NCBI GenBank assembly: GCA_028826165.1
Contig: JAPDFW010000087.1
Span: 62,001 to 126,000 of the forward strand
DNA: 64,000 nucleotides
Reading direction: 5' to 3'
From: Anaeramoeba ignava BMAN
Taxonomy: Eukaryota > Protista > Anaeramoebae
In this document: piece after piece, positions 10,852 through 35,178 of the stretch
Layout of the letters: every line of letters begins with the position of its first letter
How positions within the stretch are numbered: the stretch's first letter is position 1
The notes under the pieces: generated by a model
Told to the model about the DNA's origin: nothing
The model's input: only the letters and a program-made list of their open reading frames with translations
Database searches by the model: none
Translations under genes and position numbers: made by a program

Positions 10852-13800
10852 TTAAATTAAAAAAAGAAGTAAACCAACACTAATTTTCCCTTTATCATGT
10901 CCAATAAAAAGATATTTTTCATCAACAGAAATCATTAAAGAACTAATTTCACCTTCTAATTCAAATTGTTTAAAAACTTGAAGAGAATGCAAATTTCTAA
11001 AAGTAAGAATACCATAATTATCACCAGAAATCAAAAACTCAGAATTCTTTGAAATATCCCAACATTGAATAACATTATCAGAATTACAAGAACAAACAAA
11101 CTCAGCATTAATAGTGTAAACCCAAATTTGCTTTTTTTTAATTGAATACAAAATTAAGTGTCCATCAGGTGATATTTTGACAAGATTAATTGTTTTTCTT
11201 GATGAATTATCGGGAATAATTGATCTGACATAACGTCCTCTTTGTAAAGAATGAATAATACAAGTTCCATCTTTGGAACCTGAAAAAATCATATCCAAAT
11301 CAAGATTTATGTCTATGCAAGTAATTTCATCGTCATGTCCATAAAGAACATGCATTGGATTTGTTTCAATGGTTTCCCTTGACTTGATTAAAATTCCAGA
11401 CAACGATTGTCGTGTCTTTTGATCCCGTGACCAAAAATTTTCCTTTTGATTTGATGCAAGTCACAATATCTTTGTGATGAATTATGTTTTGCATTTGTTT
11501 GCTTTTGCGGATGCTTGTTAGTTTGAAACTTTCATCCCAATATCCACATGTAAATAATGTGTTGTGATTAATACTCACACAATTACTTAAATTGCTTATT
11601 TCTGGAACAACTGATACTCCAATTGCTGATTTTTGATAACTTGCATTATCCCGATGTATTGAAAACGGGCAGAAATTATCTTGAATAACTTGATTTTTTG
11701 AAATTTTCCCCAAATTATTATTATTATTATTATAATTATTTTTATTATTTTTTGAATCCTTTTCCAAATTATTATCATTGTTATTCCCATTTTTTGAATC
11801 ATTTCCATTATTTTCTTCCAAATTCTCATTTCCTTTTTGAAATTCATATACTTCAATATGTCTATTGATTTCTTCAAAACTTTTCACAACCCATGAATGT
11901 GTTGATAAATAACGATCCTTTTCATAAATAATAATTTGGTCAGTTACGCCAATAAAGGCGTCAAAATCTTTTGATGCAAAAAGACCAATGCATAAAATTG
12001 GAGACTTGGCAATCGTAAGAGTAAACCGTCTCAAATCAGAAATTTGCCTCATTCTCCAATAAATAAACTTATCGCCATAATGCTGGATCACTTTTTGCCG
12101 ACTCCAGCGTTTTGGATGTTCTTTTGTAAACAATTGTAAAGGTGTTTGTCCAAAATTTTCAATTTGTGTTTTGATTGACTTCAATTCTCTTTGATCTGTT
12201 ACTCTTGACAAATCAATATAATGTTCATAACTAACATAATAGAAAACATTGCAAGCTTTTTCTGCCTCTTTTCCTCTTTGTTTATACCCAAATATTAGAT
12301 CAATCCATTGATGAATATTTTCTGAAACATATTCAGATTCTAATGCTTTTCTATTTATTCTTATGAATTCTTCTGGTGAATTATTTGCCCATAATGGTAA
12401 TTTGCAATCATCAATTTGTTCCAAACTTTGTTTTTTTCCAAAATCAAATTTATTTGAGTTTCGAAGAAATTCCGGTTGATAAAAAAACTCTGGGATTAAT
12501 TCTTTGACATCTGATGTACTTTTTCTACAATTTTTCCAAGCTTTTTCAATAGAATCAAATAATCTATCTGCACGATCAAATTTACCGCCTTGTAAATAAA
12601 TAGCCAAAGTAGTAAATGGTTCCATTCTAATTAAATAATGAAGAGCAACACCTTTTTTTTTTTTTTGGATTGAAAATAAATAATTAAAATATAAATATTT
12701 AGAATATAAATATTTGAATATAAATATTTGAATAAAAATATTAAAATATAAATATTTGAATAATATTTTAATATAAATATTTGAAATATAAAATATTTAG
12801 AATATAAATATTAAAAAAAATATTTGAATAAAAATATTTAAAATATAAACCTGGACTAGAATAATGTGTTCCATAATGAAATGATGGTATATTTGGACAC
12901 GCTCGTTTAAATTCTTCATATCTTTGTCTAAAATAACTCACTCTTTTCTCATCCAATGCTCCAATAGGTTTCGAAAGATCTCGATAATTTTTAGGATCAT
13001 TTAAATCAATACTTGATTTGGAATATTCTGATAAAATCCAAGGAAAAACTGGATATTGAGAAAGATCATTATAAGACCGACCAGAAATAGTATTCAATTT
13101 CATTAAATAATCAAAAGTAGTCATTTGATGTCTGATCCATTGAGTTGTATATTGAGAATCTTGAATCCATTCAATTGGATCATTTGTATCAAAATCTATC
13201 CGTAAATTTTCTGGTTTCAAATCAACTATTGTTTTGTAAATATATTCTCGATCTCCATTTTCAAAGTTGATAAAATAATTTGTTTTGTCAACCATAAAAA
13301 ATTCTAACGCAGTTCTTTGATAAATATATCTGCGTTTATAAATAGTTGTGATATCTTTTAATTGCCATGTTTGCTCCTTATGATTCTTTTCTTTCTTTTC
13401 TTTCTTTTCTTTTTTCTCTTTCTTTTCTTCACTATCACTATTACTATTACTATTACTATTATTTTTTTTTGCATTTTCAATATTTTCATTTTCAGGAACA
13501 AAATAAATAAATTCAGGTGTTAATGTAGCATTTCCTGGAATCACATTATATGGTTTAACAAGCGTGCATTTTGTATTATATTGGAATTCCGCTTTCTTTT
13601 TTTTCGTGGCTTTATTTACTGATTCTTTTGTTGTTTCATCGTTTAAATTGTTGTTTTGTTGATCATCCTTTTTTTGCTTAATTGGTGATCCTTGTTGATA
13701 AATTTTGGAATCTAAATCTTGTTCATCCTTTTCATCGATTTCAGGTATTAAATATATTCCCGAAAGTGTATTTTTCAATTTTTCAGTTGAAATATTTTCC

Positions 13801-16800
13801 ATTTGATATTTTTCTATTAGAATTTTCGCATCTTTTTTCAATCCTTGATCTCTTGTTACTGAAGCTTCATAATGTGAATTAAAATGATAATTTCTTTTCA
13901 ATTTTCTTCTTCTTCGTGATTCATCTTCACTTTTATCGAGTTTCCAATGCATTTCCTCATTTTCTTCTGGTCCTTTCCCCCAAGGTCCTCTTTCAGAAGT
14001 GAGATTATGCAAAACATTCCCCCAAAGTTTATTCACAAAACTCGAATTATGTCTTATAAATATACTATAAATTCTTGTTTCTTCTTTTCTGCAAACTTCT
14101 TGGTAATATTTTTCAAATTCGTTATTTTTCACAATAATTGCTTGTGGTTTTTGTTTGAGACTCTGATAAACTTTGTTCAAGTTATCCAAATAGCTTTCTT
14201 TTTGTTTCCCAAATTTTTTTTGAAAAATTTCCAAAGCTGGTTGCATTTGTTGTTTCAATGCAAAATCCCATCCATTACTAGTGAATATTTTATTTGTTTC
14301 TTCAAATATTTTTGCTGGATCAGTTCCAGCAAGAAAATGTTCTCCTTTTTCATCAAGGAGTATTTCTGCAAGAAGTATTTGATGTTCTTGAATAAAAGTA
14401 TGAACTAATTTAATAAGAATTTCTTTTTTTTTCATAAGTTCTTGATTTTTATCATTTTTTTCTTCTTCTGTTTCTGATGGTTGAATTTTTGTAATATTAT
14501 TTTCTTCTATGAATGATTCTTGTTCCAAAATTAGTAAATCTGTATCTAAATCTTTATCTAAATCTTTATCTAATTTTTCATCTAAATTTTCATTTAAATT
14601 TTCATTTAATTTTTCATTTAATTTTTCATTTAAATTTTCATTTAATTTTTCATTTAATTTTTCATTTAATTTTTCATTTAAATTTTCATTTAATTTTTCA
14701 TCTAAATCTTTATCTAAATCTTCATTTGAATTTGTTTTTAATTTTTCATTTAATTTTTCATCTAAATCTTCATTTGAATTTGTTTTTAATTTTTCATTTA
14801 ATTTTTCATCTAAATTTTCATTTAATTTTTCATCTAAATTTTCATTTAATTTTTCATCTAAATTTTCATTTAATTTTTCATCTAAATTTTCATTTAAATT
14901 TTCATTTAAATTTTCATTTAAATTCTCATCTAAATCTTTATCTAAATTCTCATTTAATTTTTCATTTAATTTTTCATTTAATTTTTCATTTAAATTTTCA
15001 TCTAAATCTTTATCTAATTTTTCATTTGAATTTTCATTTAAATCTTTATCTAAATTTGAATTTATAAAATTAATTAAACTTGCTAAAATTATCAATAAAT
15101 GTTCAATAACTCGTTTTTTTGTTAAAAAATGTATTGATTCTTGTTCTAAAGATTTCAATATTCTGAAAATTTCAATGCATTCATCTACAGTTGAAACTTC
15201 AACACTTAATAATAAAAATTCTAATACAGTCTCAAAAATCATTAATTGCTTCTTGCGTGATAAAAATTGGGAATCTTTATCTTCATTCTTATCCTTCTTA
15301 TTACTTTTATTCAAATTCATTCCATTTTGAATAAATCCATAATAATCAAGAAAATCAATCACTTGACGAACAAGACCATAATCCTCCCATATAACATCAT
15401 TAGACTCGGATTTGATAACTAATGATGTTATTTCTCCCAATGAATTTGCTTTTTCAGTTTGGTTTTCTTCTCCAATAAAAATATTTGTTGTTGATAATGA
15501 TTTTGTAAGTGGTTTGTTCGTAACTACCACAAATGGATCATGAATCATATTCACTGAAAAAGCTGGCTTTAATCTCGAAAAAGAAGTTGTTTTGGATACT
15601 TTTTTCTTTTTTGGTGAATTTTTAATATCGATATTTGAAGACTTATTCAGAAAAGTCTCGTTATTTTTCTTTGTTAAATTTGCTATTTTTGTTGATGAAG
15701 GGAAAAACACAAAATTCCCAATTATTAAAATAAATTCCCCAATATTCATCATCAAATATCTAAAATGTGGTTGTTGAAGAACCTTTTGGAAATTATTTCG
15801 ATGGCGAATTCTATTGAATTCATCAAATTCTTCAACAAATTTCCCTCGTGTTTTGTGAATAAATGTTGATAAAGAAGATATAATACGTTCGAAAAGAAAC
15901 CTTGTGATAATAGCAGCATTTTCTATTTTCTTATTTTCCTTTAAAATCTCTAATATCCCCACAAATTTCAAAATCTCAAGATGAGCATCTTTTTTTTGCA
16001 GAAACATTTCTCCAATTAAAAAAGAAAGCAAATCGCTGGTATAATAATTAATTTTGGATCCAAAAGGATCATATCTTTTCTCGCTCTGTTTGGTTTTTCT
16101 GTTAATTATTTGCTTATGAAGATCATCAAAATGGTAACTTGAAAATATCCATTCTTGCCAATCTTGTTTGGCAATGAAATTCTTGCGACTTTTCTCAAAT
16201 TTCTTCAGATTATTTGTTATTTCCATCATTGTATTCACACTTTCTTGATTTTTATTTCTCCCAATAAGTGCAAAAATGGTTTTAAGAATATGTGCTTTTT
16301 GTGAAGATATTTCGTCCATTTGCCGTTGTAATGATGGTTGAAGAAACAAAAGCTTAATCATAATTTCTGAGACTTGTCGAGTGAGTTGAATTTTAATCAC
16401 ATTTTCATGGAAAATTTGATAATTTTGTTCTTGAAGAAGTGGTGAAAACTGAAGGAAATTTTCAAATTCAGAAGATATCATCATCACTTGAAGTGCTCCA
16501 TGCAAATCATTATTTTTTTGGAATTCATTAAACTTGGTGATTTCATTGATATGAATCTTCAAGATGATCTGCAAACAAATTTCTTGGAATTCTTGATTTT
16601 CAAATTTCAAAAGAGTAATAAAAGGTTCCAAAGCATTGAATAGATCCGAATCATCAGTTAAATAATCAGATACCTTTTTTGTCTCAGAAATGAAATAGAT
16701 AATTTCCATCATCGATACCATAAAATCTGCGTCTTCAGAAACAAAGCAATTTGATAACAAAACTTTGACCAGTTTTCTATCGTTCTTTTTTGATACAATT

Positions 16801-19800
16801 TGCTTTATCAATTCAATATATAGATTCCTCAATTCCAAAATTTCTTTTTGCTCAGGTTTTTTGCCAATTATTTTATCTTTTCTAAGTTCTTTTTTTTCAT
16901 TTGGAATTGCTTTTGATGATTTGTGTTTATTGGTCCATAAATAAAAATGAACAATATCAAGTAAGTATTGAAGATTGAATTCATTTTCATTTTCATTTTC
17001 ATTCTCGTTTTCATTTTCATATTCATTTTGATTTTTATTTTGATTTTGGTTCTGATTTTGGTTCTGGTTTTGAGGTAAAAATGATTCAGCAATATATTTT
17101 ATTAATTCAAAAAGTTTCTTTTGAATCGAAATATTGCAATATATCCATAAACGATAATCTAAAATGAAATTTTGAACTAAATCTTCTCGAAATTTTTTAT
17201 TACGAATTCCTAAATACATCCTTCTAATAGTAGATATAATATTGTCTGTAATATGCTCAGAATTAATGTTCTGGAAAAGAAATGAAATGATTGCAAATCC
17301 ATTTGAATGGATCATATCTTTTTGATTTAAAGAGCTTCCAATCAAAATATCTCCAATCAATTCGAAAATTTGTCCTGAAAAACGAAATGGATCCCGTTTT
17401 TGACTGATTATATTTAAAATTTTATCTGTTTTTTTTTCGTTTTCTTTGACTTTTTTCAGATTTTTTTCTTCCATTTGATTTAACGGCTGATCTAATTGTA
17501 TTATTAAAGGGAAAAATGCTTTGATTCCACCAATACAGTAAATAATGTCATAGAGATGACTCGAAACACATTTAAACATTCTCAGGAATTTTGCATGAAG
17601 ATTATTTAAACTTTGATCAAAACAATCTATTGAATCTGTGGCTTTGCTATTATAGCACATAGCAAGTTGTGAGTTTAGAGAAGAAAGGTTTTTGGATACT
17701 TTTTTTTCTGATGGATGGAAAGTCGAAATATAGTTTGGACCTAATTGATAAATATCTGCAACTTGTGTTTTGGAAAGTGTTGTTTTGAAAAAATAAAGAG
17801 TTCCCATTTGCCCAAAAAATGAATCTTCTTGATAATTAGAACCAATGCGATTTTTATTGAAATTGCTGAAATTTGGATATTTGATTTGTTTTTGTTGAAC
17901 TAAAACACCATCCAAATAAAAATTGAAATCAGTTGATGAACTCCATCTTGTGTAATTTTGTGTAAAAGCAAGAAAATGCCACTCGCGGCAATTCATTTGA
18001 AACTCTATTTTTTCCAATCGATTCAATTTTTGCTTTTTTCCAAAGCATAAAGATATGCAAAGTTTGATTGTTCTTTGTGTTTCTTTTGATTTTGTTCTCG
18101 AATGTTGTTGTTGTTGCTGTTGTTGTTTGCGAAAAATTGTGATGTTTTTCTTCTCTTCATTATTTTGGATGTCATCCCCAATTTTGATCTCATTTGAAGA
18201 AAGCAATTCTTCTCGTTCTGTATCCTCGGAATAATCCGAAGGACTAAAATATTCCGATTTCCATTCAACCAAAAAATTATCATCTGAATTGTTTGATTGA
18301 TTCTTTTTCATTCTTGTTTGGAATTCCTCTTCAGTCTCCGTTTCAAAATAAACACTGAAATTTTGGGTTTCGTTGCTGAAATGAAACAAAGTTGGTTGAA
18401 ATATTTTGTTTCTATTCAAAGAATCCGTGAAGTTTTCAAAACGGATCCAAGTGCAAAAAGAATATCCATTTTTGGAAGGCCATGAAAGTGGTTTTTGTAT
18501 TTCTAAGCATGAAGAAAGTAAATGGAAATCAAAAAATACTCTTGGAGCATTTGTTTCTTTTGAGGAAATTTGTTTCAAACTATTAATAATTAAATGTGCA
18601 TAAGAAGTGCGAAAATTATTCTCATCTCCTTTCAATAAAGAAAAAATAAGCTTTAATTCTTTCACTGTGATTCGATAACTCCCAATTATTTTGATCAAAC
18701 GAAGAACTTTCTTTTGCGATTGGGGTTGCTGCTGAAGTTGTGGTATAAATTTAACCAAAATTGAAATCAATCCTGAATTTGAACAACAAGAACGGTTGTG
18801 AATCGATTTTTCACACAACCATGAAAATGCATCAATTAAATTATTGAAAAATGTCAAATGAGGACGTGCAAAGACTGTGAATATCAAGATAATAATCTCT
18901 GGAGTTTGAATTACATAGTTTTTGCCAACTCCAGAAACTTCTTCATTGAAAAGCATGTGAAATAGAAGAGTGTAAATTTCCTTTCTGGGATTTTGACCCT
19001 CGGATTTATACAATACTTCCCCAAATTCTTCAAATGTAATCTGCTCTTTGAAAATATGAATGCTTTTGCGGTTATCAGAAAATATTTCAAATAGAAAATT
19101 TAGGATTTTCTGCGTTAAAAATCCTTTCAAATTTTCATTTTCAACAAGACCTTTCAGAATTTTGAATATCCCATTTCTCGAAATCAATATTTTTAATTTG
19201 ATATTATTTATGTGTATTGCCTCTGTCAAAAAATCCAACATTTCCCCAATTTGATCTTGTGCATTATCTTCTCCTTGATTTACTTTTTCCTCCAAATTTG
19301 TGATGTATTGGTTAATTTTATTAAAAATAATTTTAGTTCTGGATGACTTGAATTTTTGGCTATTTTTGAAAAGTCCTTCCAGTATTTTCAATGAAAACTC
19401 TGTTGTTTCTCTTTGTGGAAGAATTTCAAACAATGCATTTATTGGAATAGCACTATCCAAAAATTTGTCTTTATTCACATATTCAACAAGAAGTCTATAA
19501 ACCTCAAGCGTAAGATATATCAAGTTTATAAATTGGTTTTTTGTTAATTCAGCTTCATTCCCTAATAATTCTATTTCTTTTTTGTAATAAGTCTTCAAAT
19601 TGATTAATATTTCTGATATAGGTGTTAATAAATCATCTCGAATTGGTTGATTTTTTTTAAATGAGATGATTTGGATCAAAATTTGGAAAATATCTGAATA
19701 AATTTTTAAGTTGCTTTGTTTAGATGACAAAAGGAATATGAAAAAAAGTATGACCAAATCATAAGAAGAATCAATTTTCCTGATAAATAGAAAAATTGTT

Positions 19801-22800
19801 TGAAAAAGTTCAATTTTCAAATCAATAAATGATTGTGGTATTTTTTTTTGAGTTTGATAAATCTACAAAAAGAAAAAAAAAATCATTAATTTTCATTTTC
19901 ATTTTTTTTTTTAGATTATAATTATAATAAAATTTAACCTACATCATTCATTTCATAAAAGAAATATTTTGTGGAAAATAATCTCAATAATTTTTTTTGA
20001 TTTTGAACAGATAAAATGTTTTTTTCAATCAATTTTTTGAAAAGAGAAATACAAATAAATTGGATCATTGGATTTTCATTAGCAATGATTTTTCTTGTTT
20101 GAGAAATGATTTCATTTTCTTTGTGGTAATTATCATCAAATATATTTTCAAATATTAACATCAATTGATCTGAAAAAGGTTTTTTGTTTATTTCTGTAGA
20201 TGAATGAATTTGTTTGTTTTCGATTGATATGATTAATTTAAATAATTTGAAAAGAGAACGAAAAATTTCTTTTAATTTAGGATGAATTTCAAATGAAATA
20301 TTTAGATTATTTTTAAGATTGTATTGAATAATGTTGTATTTCTTATTTAAGTTATAAAATCCTTGAGAGAACCAACAATTTTCTTGGAGTTCAAATATAC
20401 AAGTCATTTTTTCAGGAAGAAATGATTGATTTTTTTCATTTTGATTTTCATTTTCATTTTGATTTTCATTTTCATTTTGATTTTGATTTTCAATTTTTTT
20501 CATTTTGATTTTCAATTTGATTTTCAATTTGATTTTGATTTTGAATTTGATTTTCAATTTGATTTTGATTTTGATTTTGATTTTCATTTTGATTTTCATT
20601 TTGATTTTCATTTTGATTTTCATTTTGATTTTCAATTTGATTTTGATTTTGATTTTCATTTTGAATTTGATTTTGATTTTCAATTTGATTTTGATTTTTT
20701 TCATTTTGATTTTTATTTTGATTTTGATTTTCAATTTGATTTTCATTTTCATTTTGATTTTGATTTTGATTTTGATTTTGATTTTCAATTTGATTTTCAT
20801 TTTGATTTTGATTTTGATTTTGATTTTCAATTTGATTTTGATTTTCAATTTCATTTTGATTTTTTTCATTTTGATTTTTATTTTGATTTTCATTTTGAAT
20901 TTGATTTTGATTTTCATTTTGATTTTGATTTTCATTTTCATTTTCAATTTGATTTTCAATTTGATTTTGATTTTCATTTTCATTTTCATTTTCATTTTGA
21001 TTTTGAATTTGAATTTGATTTTGATTTTGATTTTGATTTTGATTTTGATTTTGATTTTGATTTTGATTTTCATTTTGAATTTGATTTTGATTTTGATTTT
21101 CAATTTGATTTTGATTTTGATTTTCAATTTGATTTTCATTTTGAATTTGATTTTCATTTTGAATTTGATTTTCATTTTGGTTTTTGATTTTGATTTATTC
21201 CAACAAATGAATAAAATGACCAAAGTATAAAATCTGTAATACATAAAACATTTTCTTTAGACATTATATTTGTGAGTAACATTTGATTTTTTGAAATTAA
21301 ACTATGAAAAATTCTAAATATTCGAATTCTTATTTTAAACTGAAAAATATTAAAGTTAAAATCTGGAGATTTTTTTGTTTCAATATTTTGTTGATCTTTT
21401 TTCTTAGATTCATTTTTTTCTTCATTATTTTTCCCAAGTAAATTCATGATAATTTCAAATAGACAAATAAATCCATTTTCATCATTTTGGAAATTAGCAT
21501 CCAAAACTGATGTTAATAAAGGAAGATAAATATTTTGTGGTTTTAATGATTCAAGACAATAACTTATAATTTGATCTTGACTTTTTGAAGGTAATGATTT
21601 TTGAATTATAAAAGATTGGATAAAAGAAAGAATTTTCTTTTGAATTTGATAAATATTTGGTGTTAAAATGAACCTTTGATTTAATTGCTGGAAAAATTCA
21701 AGTTGTTCTTTGTTTTTAATTTTAGAATCAAATTGTAAAGATGAGAAAAGAAAATCATTTTTATTTTTATTTTTATTTTTATTTTTATTTTTATTTTTAC
21801 CAGTCAATTTTTGAATAACTGTATCATCAATCCAAATTTTAAATTTGGAATTTTTTTGAGTTTCATATTTTTCAAAGAGATAAATGAATTTTAGAATATT
21901 TGATAAAAGAAATATTGAAAAATTAAATGTTTGAGTAAATTTGATATTTGAGTCAATCTAAATTGAAGATCAAAAATAAAATGAATAAATGAATAAATGA
22001 ATAAATGAATAAATGAATAAATGAATAAATGAATAAATGAATAAATGAATAAATGAATAAATGAATAAATGAATAAATGAATAAATGAATAAATGAATAA
22101 ATAAATACAAATTCGATTGAATGAGAAAATATTTTAAGAGCAAGTGTAAATAGTTTTAAAATAATTGTATGTGCATTATAAAGGAATAATATTTGTCTAT
22201 GAACAGAAGATCTAGCTAGAAGAGCTACCATTTGTAATGAAATACCATTTTGAATATCAGGTAAAATATCACTTGCAAATCCATTTGAAAGTGTAGATTT
22301 TGCTTGATTTGGGTTTTCTAATATTGGAAGTACTTGTTCTTTTTAATTTTAATTTTAATTTTAATTTTTATAAATTAATTTTAAATTAATTTTAATATTA
22401 ATTTTAATTTTAATTTTAATTTTAAATTTAATTTTAATTTTAATTTTAAATTTAATTTTAATTTTAATTTTAATTTTATAAATGAATTTTAATATTAATT
22501 TTAATTTTAATTTTAATAAAAACCTGATAAAAATTTGAAAAAAAGATTTAAAATTCGAACAGTTTCAGTTGTAACTTCTTTTGGAATTTCATTTTCTTCT
22601 AACAAAATTTGTGAATTTTGTTTTAAATCTTTTTCTTTTTTTAATTGAGTTTCTGAGTTTTGTTTTATTTTATATGGTTTCCATTGATTATATTCATCAA
22701 GAAATACTAAAGAAAATTGAAAGTACCATAAAACTCTTTGATTCTATTAATAAAATTTAATAATTAATTTATTCCAAAAAAAAAAGAAAAGTAAACAATT

Positions 22801-23104: not shown

Positions 23105-24002
23105 TTAATCTGAATCAGAATCAGAATCAGAATCAGAATTAGAATCAAAGTCATATTGAAGAGAAATTAAAGGATCAAATTTTTTAGATAATTTAATTTC
23201 TTGAGAATTTTGTTTTTCTTTTTTTGAATTAATTTTGACATTTTCTTCTTTTTCTTTTTCAATTTCTTCTTCTTTTTCAATTTCTTTTTCATTTTCTTTT
23301 TCTTTTCTTTTTCAATTTCTTTTTCTTTTTCTTTTTCATTTTCATTTCTTTTTCATTTTCTTTTTCTTTTTCAATTTCTTTTTCTTTTTCTTTTTCTAAA
23401 TTTCCGTTAGAAATAACGGTTTCTGTAAATTTTAATCCATCTTTCTTTTTCTTAATTTGTTTTTTGTTTTTTTTCCTTTTAATTTTTTGATCAACATTTT
23501 TCTCTAAACCAAATTGAACCGAATCAGCAATTCTTCTTTTAGTAAGTCTTCTTTTATGAAGATATTTAGTTTCATCAACAATATAACCACCAGTTTTAGC
23601 AAGAAAATCTTCAGCTTTTTTTTCTAATAATTTTTTTTGTTTTTCTTTTTTTTCATTAGCAATTTTTTGAGGAAGATTAACATGAATCAATCTTCTTCCA
23701 TGAATATCACGACATGCTGTTTTGCTAATATGATTTACTCCAGAACGAAATTTAGAGCTTCTTAATAAAGACCCAAATCCTCCTTTTCCTCCTTCAAGTC
23801 TTAAATTAACTTCAATTTGTTTTTCTTTATCAATTTTTTCTTTTTCATTTAAAATTTTTTTTCCTTGTTTTAAATAAAGTTTTTCTTTTGGAATTCCTTC
23901 TTTTTGACTAATTTGTAAAAGTAAATTATCATATTCATTGTTAGAATTTAATTCAACACATAAATATTTTCCAGAAATTGATCTAACAAATAAAGAACTC
24001 AT
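23105..24002 (-). CDS. SDE2: SDE2 splicing/replication-stress factor (ubiquitin-fold N-terminus)
   Basis: Ubiquitin-like start MSSLFVRSISGK, then RLEGGKGGFGSLLR (GG|KGG processing site) and ACRDIHGRRL. An apparent frameshift at ~23345 lies in an EK repeat; the likely true end is ...YDFDSNSDSDSDSDSD* at 23105. Confidence 0.88.
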
Positions 24003-24307: not shown

Positions 24308-26055
24308 TTAATTTATCAAGCAACTTTAGTTTTTTTTTTTTTAATCCAAAAAAAAATATTTTTTTTTTCAATTTAGAAATGTTAAAAAAATATATCAAAT
24401 TATCAATAGAAAATCTTACCCTCCACCACTTTATTTCCAATTTAAATCAAATTCAAAATTAAATTAAAAATTAAATTTAAAATTAAATTAAAAATTAAAT
24501 TTAAAAATTTAAAATTTAAATTAAAATTTAAATATTATTTTACCCGCAATCACATCCTCCTCTAAATTATCCAAAAAGTTTTAAATAATTGAATTTTTTA
24601 CATAAATATTTTTTAAAATTAAAATTAAAATTAAAATTAAAATTTATATTATTTATATTTTTATATTTTTTACGCGCATCCACTAATATAATAAAAATAA
24701 AAAAATTTAATTTTAATTTACATTTCTAAAAATTAATCTATTTATTTATATTTAAAAATTTATCTATTTATTTATATTTAAAAATTTACCCGCAATCACA
24801 TCCACTATTTATAATAATAATTAATAAATTAATATTAAAAATTAATTTAATTATTTATATTTCAAAATTTACCCGCAATCACATCCACTATTTATAATAA
24901 AAATTAATAAATTAAAATTAAATATAAATAGAAATTAATTTATTTAATTATTTATATTTAAAAATTTACCCGCAATCACATCCACTATTTATAATAAAAA
25001 TTAATAAATTAAAATTAAAAATATAAATAGAAATTAATTTAATTATTTTATATTTAAAAATTTACCCGCAATCACAGCATCCACTAATTTTAATAAATTA
25101 ATAAAAGAGAAGAATAAAAAGATTTTAAATTAAATTTCAATTAAAAAAAATTCAATTAAAAAGTTAAACATTTACTCGCAATTACAACCACTAAAATAAT
25201 TAAATAAATTAAAATTAAAATTAAAATTAAAATTATAATTAAATTAAATTTAAAATTAAATTTAAAATCAAATTAAAATTATAACTTACTCGCAATTACA
25301 ACAACCACTAAATTAATAAAATTTAAAAAGAGAAGAATAAAAAGATTTTAAATTAAATTTCAATTAAAAAAAATCAATTAAAAAGTTAAACATTTACTCG
25401 CAATTACAACCACTAATTTTAAAAAAATAATTTTATAAAAATAATTTTATAAAAATAATTAAATAATAAGAAAAAACTTTAAAACTTACTGGCAATCACA
25501 ACTTTTAAATCAGAAATGGAATTAAAAAATTAAAATAAAAATGATTTAATCATTAAATAAAAAAAATCCAAAAAAAAAAATAATAAAAAAAGAAATTAAA
25601 AAAAAAATTAAAGCTAAAAATTATTACCAATTGCAATTTCCACTATTTTTTTTTTTAAATAGAAAAAAAAGAAAAAGGATTTGAAATTAAAATGAATTGA
25701 AATTAAAATAAATTGAATTGAATTAATGAAAAAAAAAATAAAAAAATCATGTTTACCAATCACAACTAAAACAACCTATACAACCATCACAAGCTTTTTT
25801 TTTTTAATTAAAATTAAAATTTAAAATTTAAAATTAAGTGAGAAAAAAATCGTTATTAAAACTTAAAAGAAAAAAATTTTTTTCATTTTCATTTTCATTT
25901 TCATTTTCATTTTCTTTTTAGAAATTACTTCCTGAATTAACTGAAGATTGACCAAGATTTCCCGAATAAGGTTGAGTAGAATGAGGTTGAGGACCAACTC
26001 CTTGATTTTGTGTAACAGCTGTTGAAACAATACCTCCATCAACTTCGTCCGCCAT
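24308..26055 (-). CDS. 15-exon micro-exon gene encoding a 117-aa Cys/Gly/Asp-rich metallothionein-like protein with C-terminal CaaX-type motif
   Basis: Exons: 26055-25929, 25793-25757, 25642-25628, 25501-25490, 25412-25398, 25307-25290, 25190-25176, 25083-25066, 24984-24970, 24887-24873, 24804-24790, 24682-24674, 24561-24544, 24428-24420, 24323-24308. Every internal exon is flanked by AG and GTAA. The joined 354 nt is an open frame ending in TAA. Confidence 0.88.
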
Positions 26056-26267
26056 TATTTAAAAATAAATGAAAAAAATAAATGAAAAAAATAAATGAAA
26101 AAAATGAAAAAATGAAAAAAATGAAAAATGAAAAATGAAAAAATTTGATTAATAAAATCCAAAAATAAATTTGATTAAAAAAAATGGAATAAAATCCAAA
26201 AATTAATTCGAAATGAAATTTATTTTTTTCTTTTTCTTTTCCAAATTAAAAATTATTTGTTTAAATT

Positions 26268-27925
26268 TCAAAATTTAATATTTGATAAAATTTTGCAAAT
26301 CTCATCAAAACTTGGACGAGAATCAGGATTTTGTTTCCAACATTTTTTAATTAAATCAATAATTTCCTGAGGAGCTTGTTTTGTGATTGGTAATTGAGGA
26401 CGAACCTTTTTGTAACCAACTTCATTTCTGAGATCATAATTACGAACAGATTGTAAATGAACTCGATAAGGAACTTGTCTAAAAACAATTTCCCATAAAA
26501 CAAGACCATAACTATAAACATCCACTTTTGAGGTGTATTTAGATTCCTTCCTTAAAATCTCAGGTGCCATCCAATTCAATGTGCCTGTGTTAAATGTAAG
26601 TGGATCCAAATCATATTCTTTTGCTTCATATCTTGAATATCCAAAATCAATTATTTTCAAGTGATTATCTTCAGTAATCAAAATATTGGATGATTTCAAA
26701 TCACGATGAATGAATTTTAAGCTATGCAAATATTTCATTCCTTCTGCTATATCTTTTGCATATCTTACTATTATTGGATGTTTGAGTTTCACTTTTTTTC
26801 TTTTGAGATTCTTTAGTTTTTCATATAATGTTCCTTTTGGTAAATATTCAAGTACAATACATGGATCATATTTTATTTCAGATTTTTTGAGGATTTCTTC
26901 ATTTTTATCATTTTCTTTATTTTCTGTTTGATTTTTTTGGAGAATTTCTTCAGGATAATGATATCCAATAATTTGAATAATATTTGGATGGTTACATTTA
27001 CTTTTTTTAAATTGATTTAAATTTGATTTGATTTAATTTACTTTTTTTAAATTGATTTGAATTTTAATTTGGATTTGATTTAATTTTATTTAATTTGAAT
27101 TGAATTGAATTTGATTTGAATTTAATTTGAATTGATTAAATTTGATTTTGATTTTAATTTAAATTTGATTTAATTTGATTTAAAATTGATTTGATTTGAT
27201 TTAATTTGAATTTTTTACCATAAAACACTAATTTCTCTTTCAAAAAGTTCTAAAGAATATCCATGCAAATTTGAAAATTTCTTCACAGCTACATATTTAT
27301 CTTTGTACTCAGCTATAAAAACAGAACCAAAAGCACCATTAGCAATATGCTGAATTTCTTTAAGTTGAGGAAAATCAATGGAATATTCTCTTTTATTTAA
27401 TTTAGTATCCATTTGATAAGGATTAATAAATTTATCAAAAAGAGAAGGAGAATAATCAATAAATTTTATAGAATAATCCTTCAAAAACGCTAAAACTTTA
27501 TCAGTTGCCAAATCAATAGGAGTTTCATCAAATTCATCCTTAAGAAACGGATTAGCACCAAAAGAAAGAAGTAATTTTGTGATTCTTTCATTTGATGAAA
27601 AAACGGCAAAATGAAGAGCTGTTTCTTGATTTTTTTGATCTGCTTGATCCACATTTGCTCCAAATTCTAAAAGCAAATTTGTAATTTCATAAAAATTATT
27701 TGAAACAGCCATTTTTAACGGAAATCCATAATTTTCATTTCCTAAATTTGGATCGGCTCCATTTTCCAAAAGTACTTTTATACATCCTAAATGCTTGTCT
27801 TGTATTGCAAATTGAAGTGGTGTTCGATCAAGAAAAAAACTGTTGATATCTAATTGGTAACTTTTTAAAATCATTGGTATTTTTTCTGCTTCATGTGAAA
27901 GAATTATATTAATTAAATTTTGCAT
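26268..27925 (-). CDS. Ankyrin-repeat tyrosine-kinase-like (TKL) protein kinase; intron 27218-27001
   Basis: Ankyrin motifs TPLQFA..LLENGADPN and TALHFA..LLSFGANP. Kinase motifs GAFGSV, VAVKK, HRDLKSSN, DFG, GTLNWMAPE, DVYSYG, CW...RPSF. Confidence 0.93.
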
Positions 27926-28018
27926 TTTATAATAAAATAACAAATAACAAATAACAACAAATAACAAGGAAAAAAATGATTTTCCCATTTTTTTAAAAAA
28001 AATATTTTTTTATTATTT

Positions 28019-32819: not shown

Positions 32820-35057
32820 AAAAATGAAAAAATAAAAATGAAAATAAAAATAATTTAATAATTAATTTGGAAATGTTTTTAAAATTTAATTATAAAATAA
32901 ATTATAATTAAATATTAATTCAAAATATATTTAAATTTAAATATAAATTTAATCAAAAATTATTAATAATTTTTTATTTAAAAAATAAATAAAAATAATT
33001 TAATAATTAATTTGGAAATATTTTTAAAATTTAATTTCAAAATAAATCATAATTAAATATTAATTCAAAATATATTTAAATTTAAATATAAATTTAATTA
33101 AAAATAATTATTAATTTTATTTAAAAATAAATAAAAATAATTTAATAATTAATTTGGAAATGTTTTTAAAATTTAATTTTAAAATAAATTATAATTAAAT
33201 ATTAATTCAAAATCGATTTAAATTTAAATATAAATTTAATCAAAAATAATTAATAATTTTTATTTAAAAATGAATAAAAATAAATTAATAATTAATTTGA
33301 AAATGTTTTTAAAATTTAATTTTAAAATAAATTATAATTAAATATTAATTCAAAATATATTTAAATTTAAATATAAATTTAATTAAAAATAATTAATAAT
33401 TTTTTATTTAAAAAATAAATAAAAATAATTTAATAATTAATTTGGAAATGTTTTTAAAATTTAATTTTAAAATAAATTATAATTAAATATTAATTCAAAA
33501 TAAATTTAAATATAAATATAAATTTAATCAAAAATAATTATTAATTTTTATTTAAAAATAAATAAAAATAATTTAATAATTAATTTGGAAATGTTTTTAG
33601 AATTTAATTTCAAAATAAATTATAATTAAATATTAATTCAAAATCGATTTAAATTTAAATATAAATTTAATCAAAAATAATTAATAATTTTTATTTAAAA
33701 ATAAATAAAAATAATTTAATAATTAATTTGGAAATGTTTTTAAAATTTAATTTTAAAATAAATTATAATTAAATATTAATTCAAAATCGATTTAAATTTA
33801 AATATAAATTTAATCAAAAATAATTAATAATTTTTATTTAAAAATAAATAAAAATAATTTAATAATTAATTTGGAAATGTTTTTAAAATTTAATTATAAA
33901 ATAAATTATAATTACCATATTAATTCAAAATAAATTTAAATTTAAATATAAATTTAATTAAAAATTATTAATAATTTTTATTTAAAAATAAATAAAAATA
34001 ATTTAATAATTATTTTGGAAATGTTTTTAAAATTTAATTTTAAAATAAATTATAATTAAATATTAATTCAAAATATATTTAAATTTAAATATAAATTTAA
34101 TTAAAAATAATTAATAATTTTTATTTAAAAAATAAATAAAAATAATTTAATAATTAATTTGGAAATGTTTTTAAAATTTAATTATAAAATAAATTATAAT
34201 TACATATTAATTCAAAATATATTTAAATTTAAATATAAATTTAATCAAAAATTATTAATAATTTTTATTTAAAAATGAATAAAAATAAATTAATAATTAA
34301 TTTGGAAATGTTTTTAAAATTTAATTATAAAATAAATCATAATTAAATATTAATTCAAAATCGATTTAAATTTAAATATAAATTTAATTAAAAATAATTA
34401 TTAATTTTTTATTTAAAAAATAAATAAAAATAAATTAATAATTAATTTGGAAATGTTTTTAAAATTTAATTTCAAAATAAATCATAATTAAATATTAATT
34501 CAAAATATATTTAAATTTAAATATAAATTTAATTAAAAATAATTAATAATTTTTTATTTAAAAAATAAAAATAAAAATAATTTAATAATTAATTTGGAAA
34601 TGTTTTTAAAATTTAATTTTAAAATAAATTATAATTAAATATTAATTCAAAATCGATTTAAATTTAAATATAAATTTAATTAAAAATAATTATTAATTTT
34701 TTATTTAAAAAATAAATAAAAATAAATTAATAATTAATTTGGAAATGTTTTTAAAATTTAATTATAAAATAAATTATAATTAAATATTAATTCAAAATCG
34801 ATTTAAATTTAAATATAAATTTAATCAAAAATAATTATTAATTTTTATTTAAAAAATGAATAAAAATAATTTAATAATTAATTTGGAAATGTTTTTAAAA
34901 TTTAATTTTAAAATAAATTATAATTAAATATTAATTCAAAATAAATTTAAATTTAAATATAAATTTAATTAAAAATAATTATTAATTTTTTATTTAAAAA
35001 ATAAATAAAAATAAATTAATAATTAATTTGGAAATGTTTTTAAAATTTAATTATAAA
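32820..35057. repeat. ~144-bp tandem satellite, about 16 copies
   Basis: The TAATTTGGAAATGTTTTTAAAA landmark recurs from ~32867 to ~35028 at ~144-bp spacing, with near-identical units. Confidence 0.93.
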
Positions 35058-35178
35058 AGAGATCTTTAAATTGATTATTTTAGAAATAAATTTAAAAAAA
35101 CCAAAACAAAAAGAAACAAAAAAAATTTTTTTCATTTTTTTTTTTTCATTTTTTTTTAGAATAAAAAATATAAATAAA

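Follow-up and report, generated by a model that had tools for sequence, protein, structure and literature searches.

The window analysed here is a stretch of 64,000 nt from Anaeramoeba ignava BMAN (contig JAPDFW010000087.1, positions 62,001 to 126,000 of the forward strand), and all positions below refer to it unless a different contig is named. On the minus strand, from 26055 to 24308, lies a predicted gene of 15 exons, assembled by joining the reading frame in a script, with an ankyrin-repeat protein kinase gene upstream and the SDE2 gene downstream. The features of the locus, in the direction of transcription, are:

26268..27988, minus strand: upstream neighbour, ankyrin-repeat protein kinase (Pfam Ank and Pkinase), a separate gene
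26056..26205, minus strand: AT-rich upstream region with 8 TTCAT repeats; on the weak evidence of a repeat count, possibly an initiator-like or 5' region
25929..26055, minus strand: exon 1, 127 nt, ATG at 26055; encodes a Gly/Gln/Ser/Pro-rich N-terminus without signal peptide; ends in phase 1
25757..25793, minus strand: exon 2, 37 nt, phase 1-2; first Cys-rich block
25628..25642, minus strand: micro-exon 3, 15 nt, phase 2-2
25490..25501, minus strand: micro-exon 4, 12 nt
25398..25412, minus strand: micro-exon 5, 15 nt; same sequence as exon 7
25290..25307, minus strand: micro-exon 6, 18 nt
25176..25190, minus strand: micro-exon 7, 15 nt; intron 7 is 96% like intron 5
25066..25083, minus strand: micro-exon 8, 18 nt
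24970..24984, minus strand: micro-exon 9, 15 nt; same sequence as exons 10 and 11
24873..24887, minus strand: micro-exon 10, 15 nt
24790..24804, minus strand: micro-exon 11, 15 nt
24674..24682, minus strand: micro-exon 12, 9 nt
24544..24561, minus strand: micro-exon 13, 18 nt; the sole micro-exon with A as first base
24420..24428, minus strand: micro-exon 14, 9 nt; Gly run
24308..24323, minus strand: terminal coding exon 15, 16 nt; CaaX box Cys-Leu-Ile-Asn, then TAA ending at 24308
23289..24002, minus strand: downstream neighbour, SDE2 (PF22782; public protein of 237 aa), a separate gene

The first-pass annotation had proposed a hidden gene with twelve frame-symmetric micro-exons, and its anatomy is reproduced on recomputation. 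The sizes of exons 3 to 14 (15, 12, 15, 18, 15, 18, 15, 15, 15, 9, 18 and 9 nt) come out exactly, with phase 2-2 throughout, and the joined frame of exons 1-15 is 354 nt long with no internal stop. The 14 introns measure 68-135 nt, all with GTAA donors, again as described, and their acceptors are TAG or AAG. Introns 2-14 have a GC content of 5.7%; A. ignava introns genome-wide have 8.1% GC, a median length of 102 nt and a mode of 76 nt (PMC11550330, Table S3A), and in both length and GC the introns of the micro-exon gene match those typical of the species. Because the donors of introns 2-14 are GTAA in phase 2, retention of any of these introns brings in a TAA one codon downstream.

Three modifications of the model were considered and rejected. 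An additional exon AG/AAAT/GTAA (24725-24722, 4 nt, AT-only) would shift the frame and leave an intron of 39 nt; GTTT donors 6 nt downstream of exons 5 and 7 would take in an in-frame TAA; and an acceptor internal to exon 2 has the wrong phase after exon 1.

The surroundings of the gene have several peculiarities of their own. TTCAT occurs in 8 copies within 150 nt upstream; the gene body, 1.6 kb long, has 2, and the regions ahead of other ORFs average 1.2. Across the sampled ORFs, upstream versus downstream enrichment is not significant (p=0.09). TTCAT/TTTTTCATT tracts lie directly upstream of start codons at 26056-26205 and at 35130-35178, and may be initiator-like; parabasalids have initiator-like elements, which would offer a parallel. 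The SDE2 frame ends at 23289, and an Asp/Ser-rich, coding-like tail runs on in another frame to about 23107 (23107-23400, minus strand), so that a frameshift in a GAAAAA repeat, i.e., an assembly error, is possible, and the public protein of 237 aa could be a truncated form. Further away, an array of about 2.2 kb (32830-35050), made of tandem units of about 140 bp with about 4% GC and an occasional lone CG site, separates two divergent genes. A large BEACH/neurobeachin gene occupies 19820-21807 and 11366-19820 on the minus strand; its upstream coding region contains a long Gln/Asn/Glu/Ile hexamer repeat with apparent frame breaks.

A series of indirect tests bears on whether the array encodes protein. 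Between 25660 and 24400 there are 12 G-rich islands, each of which starts after AG and stops before GTAA. The alternative frames of the micro-exon block give, in one case, 9 stops and, in the other, a featureless string of Val, Ala and Ile. When the 42.8-Mb genome was searched with the pattern of the 15-nt CxC micro-exon, the five matches were all in this gene, and the control gave one. GC content at the three codon positions of exon 1 is 0.64, 0.50 and 0.10, a coding codon bias that favours a real gene. Length variants of the exons differ by 3 or 6 nt only, and 7 of the 14 introns have lengths that are not multiples of three. Codon choice is tied to splice position: all 10 codons that stand as the final full Cys codon upstream of a donor are TGC, whereas of the 19 other Cys codons in the gene 3 are (Fisher p=1.4e-5, a value inflated by duplicated units, which falls to about 0.02 once duplicates are collapsed). 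TGC may have been preferred there since TGT would set a second GT in competition with the donor, immediately ahead of it; TGC also places a C at position -3, which pairs with U1. Taken together, these tests, all of them indirect, make it very probable that the micro-exon array is a real protein-coding gene.

The uniformity of the donors had been presented as a distinguishing feature. Fourteen GTAA donors of 14 is indeed notable (about 1e-3 with duplicated introns collapsed), but there is nothing exotic about the signal, since GTAA is the commonest donor genome-wide (47 of 87 ordinary-intron candidates, or 54%; these are rough candidates, and the control gave 26). The donors of the gene are therefore better seen as strong ones than as a special class.

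Homologue searches had to proceed exon by exon, and exon 1 is the only one long enough, exons 2-15 being too short for a profile search. No relative of exon 1 was found in the A. ignava genome besides itself, nor among the 50% cluster representatives, the 25-79-aa proteins of the 90% collection, the Atlas or Pfam, and the gene thus draws no support from conservation. A DNA search with the locus matched only AT-rich, intron-like sequence, and Rfam gave one sub-threshold chance match and nothing above noise. The 90% collection does contain the neighbouring SDE2 protein (100% identity), and the blank for exon 1 next to it suggests that the public annotation lacks the micro-exon gene. A synteny attempt through the SDE2 protein search showed no named A. 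flamelloides orthologue.

The array carries traces of its own construction. Sequence likeness reaches 96% between introns 5 and 7 and 95-96% among introns 8, 9 and 10; micro-exon 5 is identical to 7, and 9 is identical to 10 and 11. It follows that the array, or at least its recent part, grew by tandem duplication of units consisting of an intron and an exon. The two ends of such a duplicated unit are equal in phase, and only a unit whose exon is a multiple of 3 nt survives, so that symmetry is expected without selection for exon skipping. We propose that a Cys/Gly/Asp repeat domain expanded by tandem duplication of units made of an intron and a 9-18-nt exon. Survivors would be only those units in which an exon of 3n length keeps phase 2, and the symmetry would follow from the mode of construction. 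The main transcript most likely carries all or most of the micro-exons, and any skipping would probably amount to noisy length variation.

Combinatorial splicing of the gene, as put forward in the first-pass annotation, is open to the array in principle. The claim that nearly any subset of micro-exons keeps the frame holds on enumeration: 4092 of 4096 subsets reach the CaaX end, and, as had already been noticed, the joins of exon 2 to 13 and of exon 3 to 13 create TGA, no other skip creating a stop. In silico, the subsets encode 1788 distinct peptides of 59-117 aa, all of them drawing on the same few residues, mostly Cys, Gly, Asp and Asn. Since the exons are near-synonymous Cys/Gly/Asp units, skipping would mainly tune length and the number of thiols and would not produce new surfaces of the kind proposed for schistosome micro-exon genes, in which exon skipping gives rise to protein variants.

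The best-surviving alternative takes this further and has the same gene extensively and perhaps regulatedly spliced, yielding a ladder of 59-117-aa isoforms with variable Cys number, by which metal capacity or the length of the anchor could be tuned, an independent counterpart of the micro-exon genes (MEGs) of flatworms. Very short exons flanked by weak AT-rich introns are prone to skipping, which counts in favour of such a ladder, as do the breadth of in-frame subsets and peptides just given and the agreement of the gene with the operational MEG rule; a precedent exists in amphioxus MT2, where alternative splicing alters the number of domains (PMC8476144). Yet the origin by duplication already accounts for the symmetry with no selection for skipping, the variants share the same few residues, a secretion signal is absent, and a free-living amoeba offers no host-immunity rationale. 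We regard the ladder as possible but unlikely. Abundant, condition-dependent skipping of the micro-exons appears slightly more doubtful. Much the same doubt applies to a broader proposal, i.e., that this may be an independently evolved MEG-like gene in which skipping of Cys exons of 3-6 codons would set the thiol number of a membrane-anchored, metallothionein-like metal or redox buffer, with at least one further gene of the kind (at C115, see below).

The predicted product is a protein of 117 aa and 11.2 kDa, with a pI of about 4, no Lys or Arg and 29 Cys (25%). Its N-terminal 43 residues are Gly/Ser/Gln/Pro-rich and free of Cys; the remaining 74 hold all 29 Cys, which are separated by 1-2 residues in 23 of 28 spacings and by 0-2 in 26 of 28 (CxC, CxxC and CC), amid Gly, Asp and Asn. 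The aromatic complement of the Cys domain is a single Phe, and there is also one His. By hydropathy, the only measure applied, no hydrophobic leader is seen in the N-terminus (maximum 15-residue Kyte-Doolittle value, KD15, of 0.61). The C-terminus, Cys-Leu-Ile-Asn-stop, fits a CaaX box, with Cys in the fourth position from the end, aliphatic a1 and a2, and a permissive X. Yeast FTase is blocked by Asp, Glu, Lys or Arg at a2 and by Lys, Pro or Arg at X, according to PMC10320760, and Cys-Leu-Ile-Asn contains none of the blocking residues named there. The A. ignava genome has three prenyltransferase beta genes (PF00432).

In composition, the product has the properties of metallothioneins: it is small, with Cys in the range of about 20-30%, has CxC, CC and CxxC motifs, and is poor in aromatic residues. 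Against a kinship of function, many metallothioneins differ from it in Lys/Arg content and pI. In the absence of a signal peptide the protein would be intracellular, acting as a metallothionein-like metal-thiolate buffer or a redox/sulfide buffer. Because the product would be a cytosolic, Cys-dense, aromatic-poor repeat, metal-thiolate binding appears, on composition, the most plausible of its possible activities. Prenylation at the CaaX box would tether the buffer protein to a membrane, and S-acylation is possible as well. The anatomy of the locus, its duplicated units and its coding and splice-site signatures are seen in the sequence itself; the splicing and expression of the gene and the prenylation and metal binding of its product are all things that we infer. 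The reading we prefer as a whole, at a probability of roughly 55%, is of a real spliceosomal gene, built by duplication and spliced for the most part constitutively, with a metallothionein-like, membrane-tethered product.

The same composition could be read as that of a membrane protein of the CYSTM/CYSPD or cysteine-string kind, in which the Cys would be mainly S-acylated and, together with the prenyl group, would anchor the Gly/Pro/Gln-rich N-terminus, without serving primarily as a metal sink. A length of 117 aa, the polar Pro/Gly/Gln-rich N-terminus and the Cys-rich C-terminal region do resemble CYSTM proteins, which have 60-150 aa and are palmitoylated, and CaaX with palmitoylation is a common pairing (PMC10840359). 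The CYSTM domain, however, has 5-6 Cys in a hydrophobic helix, and here 29 Cys stand in a polar Gly/Asp repeat (maximum KD15 0.92), the PPxY motif is absent, and exon 1 has no Pfam match; judged from these features, we hold an acylated anchor of this type to be improbable, and a lesser rival to metal binding. Least probable is that the islands are not spliced into protein at all but are the remains of a gene in decay or a spaced repeat without coding function, exon 1 being expressed unspliced as a 45-aa ORF and in no other form: the lack of a homologue and the apparent omission of the gene from the public annotation would fit, but the frame is intact over 14 junctions with canonical splice sites throughout, exon lengths change only by 3n, TGC is specific to the splice position, a CaaX box ends the frame, the sole Rfam match is below threshold and at chance level, and the 45-aa ORF is likewise missing from the protein collection.

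Pattern searches of the whole genome revealed one further cluster of Cys micro-exons, at C115:916055-916919 on the plus strand. Five 9-nt AG/NNNNTGCGR/GTAAT units are seen there, and their spacings of 95, 182, 184 and 380 nt suggest a unit of about 92-95 nt, with about ten units in all. The Cys codon before the donor is TGC in all five candidate exons. The cluster is probably another Cys-repeat micro-exon gene; a phase-2 reading would place a Cys at every third residue. In a 300-kb sample, no further clusters of 9-18-nt micro-exons were found, and candidates for 3-nt exons (AG/NNN/GTAA) numbered 12, versus 2 in the reversed control; with such enrichment, exons of this minute size seem to lie within the splicing capacity of the cell. 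The 3-nt candidates in C93:100001-200000 and 500001-600000 are often paired. Many contigs carry a separate AT-rich repeat of about 160 bp, frequently close to a contig end (e.g., C3:9-43, C42:414-1046, C57:10096-11124, C108:173208-173879); the repeat may be subtelomeric.

In the literature we found, runs of symmetric micro-exons that make up most of the exons of a gene are described from parasitic flatworms, and the top-ranked matches contained nothing on micro-exons in Anaeramoeba. A. ignava BMAN is an anaerobic amoeba that is free-living and harbours symbionts which reduce sulfate (PMC11550330). A MEG-like gene in a free-living metamonad, with the stage of duplication still visible, provides a test of whether this architecture needs selection for protein variation; the alternative is that a MEG-like layout arises by repeat expansion in a cell with a spliceosome that handles tiny exons. 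The case also suggests that the public annotation of A. ignava may miss whole genes, and, for an amoeba whose symbionts reduce sulfate, it brings to light a candidate protein that resembles metallothioneins and carries a prenylation signal.

Several known systems share parts of this design. Plant HIPPs combine metal-binding Cys motifs with a C-terminal isoprenylation site (PMC10459601); they are, however, proteins of vascular plants with folded HMA domains, whereas the A. ignava product is a low-complexity Cys array, so that the likeness is an analogy only. CYSTM/CYSPD proteins (yeast Cpp1-3, plant CDT1/PCC1), which are linked to metal tolerance (PMC10840359), are also 60-150 aa long, with a Pro/Gly-rich N-terminus, a Cys-rich C-terminus and a likely lipid anchor; they differ in their C-terminal hydrophobic helix with 5-6 conserved Cys, for which the hydropathy of the predicted product (maximum KD15 0.92) is too low, and the A. 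ignava protein has its 29 Cys in a polar Gly/Asp repeat, lacks PPxY and ends in a CaaX box.

Multimodular metallothioneins of tunicates, molluscs, fungi and Tetrahymena are similar in composition, being small, with CxC, CxxC and CC motifs, near-absent aromatics in the Cys domain and internal duplication. Such proteins grow through internal duplication, and BscMT1 has a Cys content of 29%, versus 25% here (PMC8476144). The unit of repetition is different: a single exon of 3-6 residues with 0-3 Cys in A. ignava, and a domain of 9-12 Cys in the multimodular proteins. The Cys-free N-terminus of 43 residues, the lack of Lys and Arg and the CaaX box also set the A. ignava protein apart from them.

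In gene architecture, the closest parallel is with the MEGs of Schistosoma, Echinococcus and Hymenolepis, in which long flanking exons enclose a run of short symmetric exons of 3n length (PMC5825161, PMC4671649, bioRxiv 2020.04.08.031872). The A. ignava gene likewise has longer exons on the flanks of a short symmetric 3n run, a small product of about 11 kDa and a structure that is hard for gene finders. By the operational rule used for tapeworm genomes (bioRxiv 2020.04.08.031872), the predicted model, with 15 exons, 12 micro-exons and a run of 12, qualifies, and exons of 9-18 nt in phase 2-2 fall within the symmetric 6-36-nt exons typical of Schistosoma. Two other Schistosoma traits are missing: micro-exons account for 174 of 351 coding nt (50%), not about 80%, and in place of the signal peptide of a secreted or exposed protein there is no hydrophobic leader and a CaaX end. 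The early description of a hidden MEG-like gene thus stands as far as the gene itself, well backed by indirect tests on sequence, and the operational architecture are concerned, and falls short in these two traits. Unlike the flatworm genes, moreover, the A. ignava gene, known here from a predicted model, has exons that are near-identical repeat units and introns that are visibly duplicated, and it belongs to a free-living organism; no sequence relationship to flatworm MEGs was found or is implied. Its layout is that of a MEG, but we would not class it among the MEGs.
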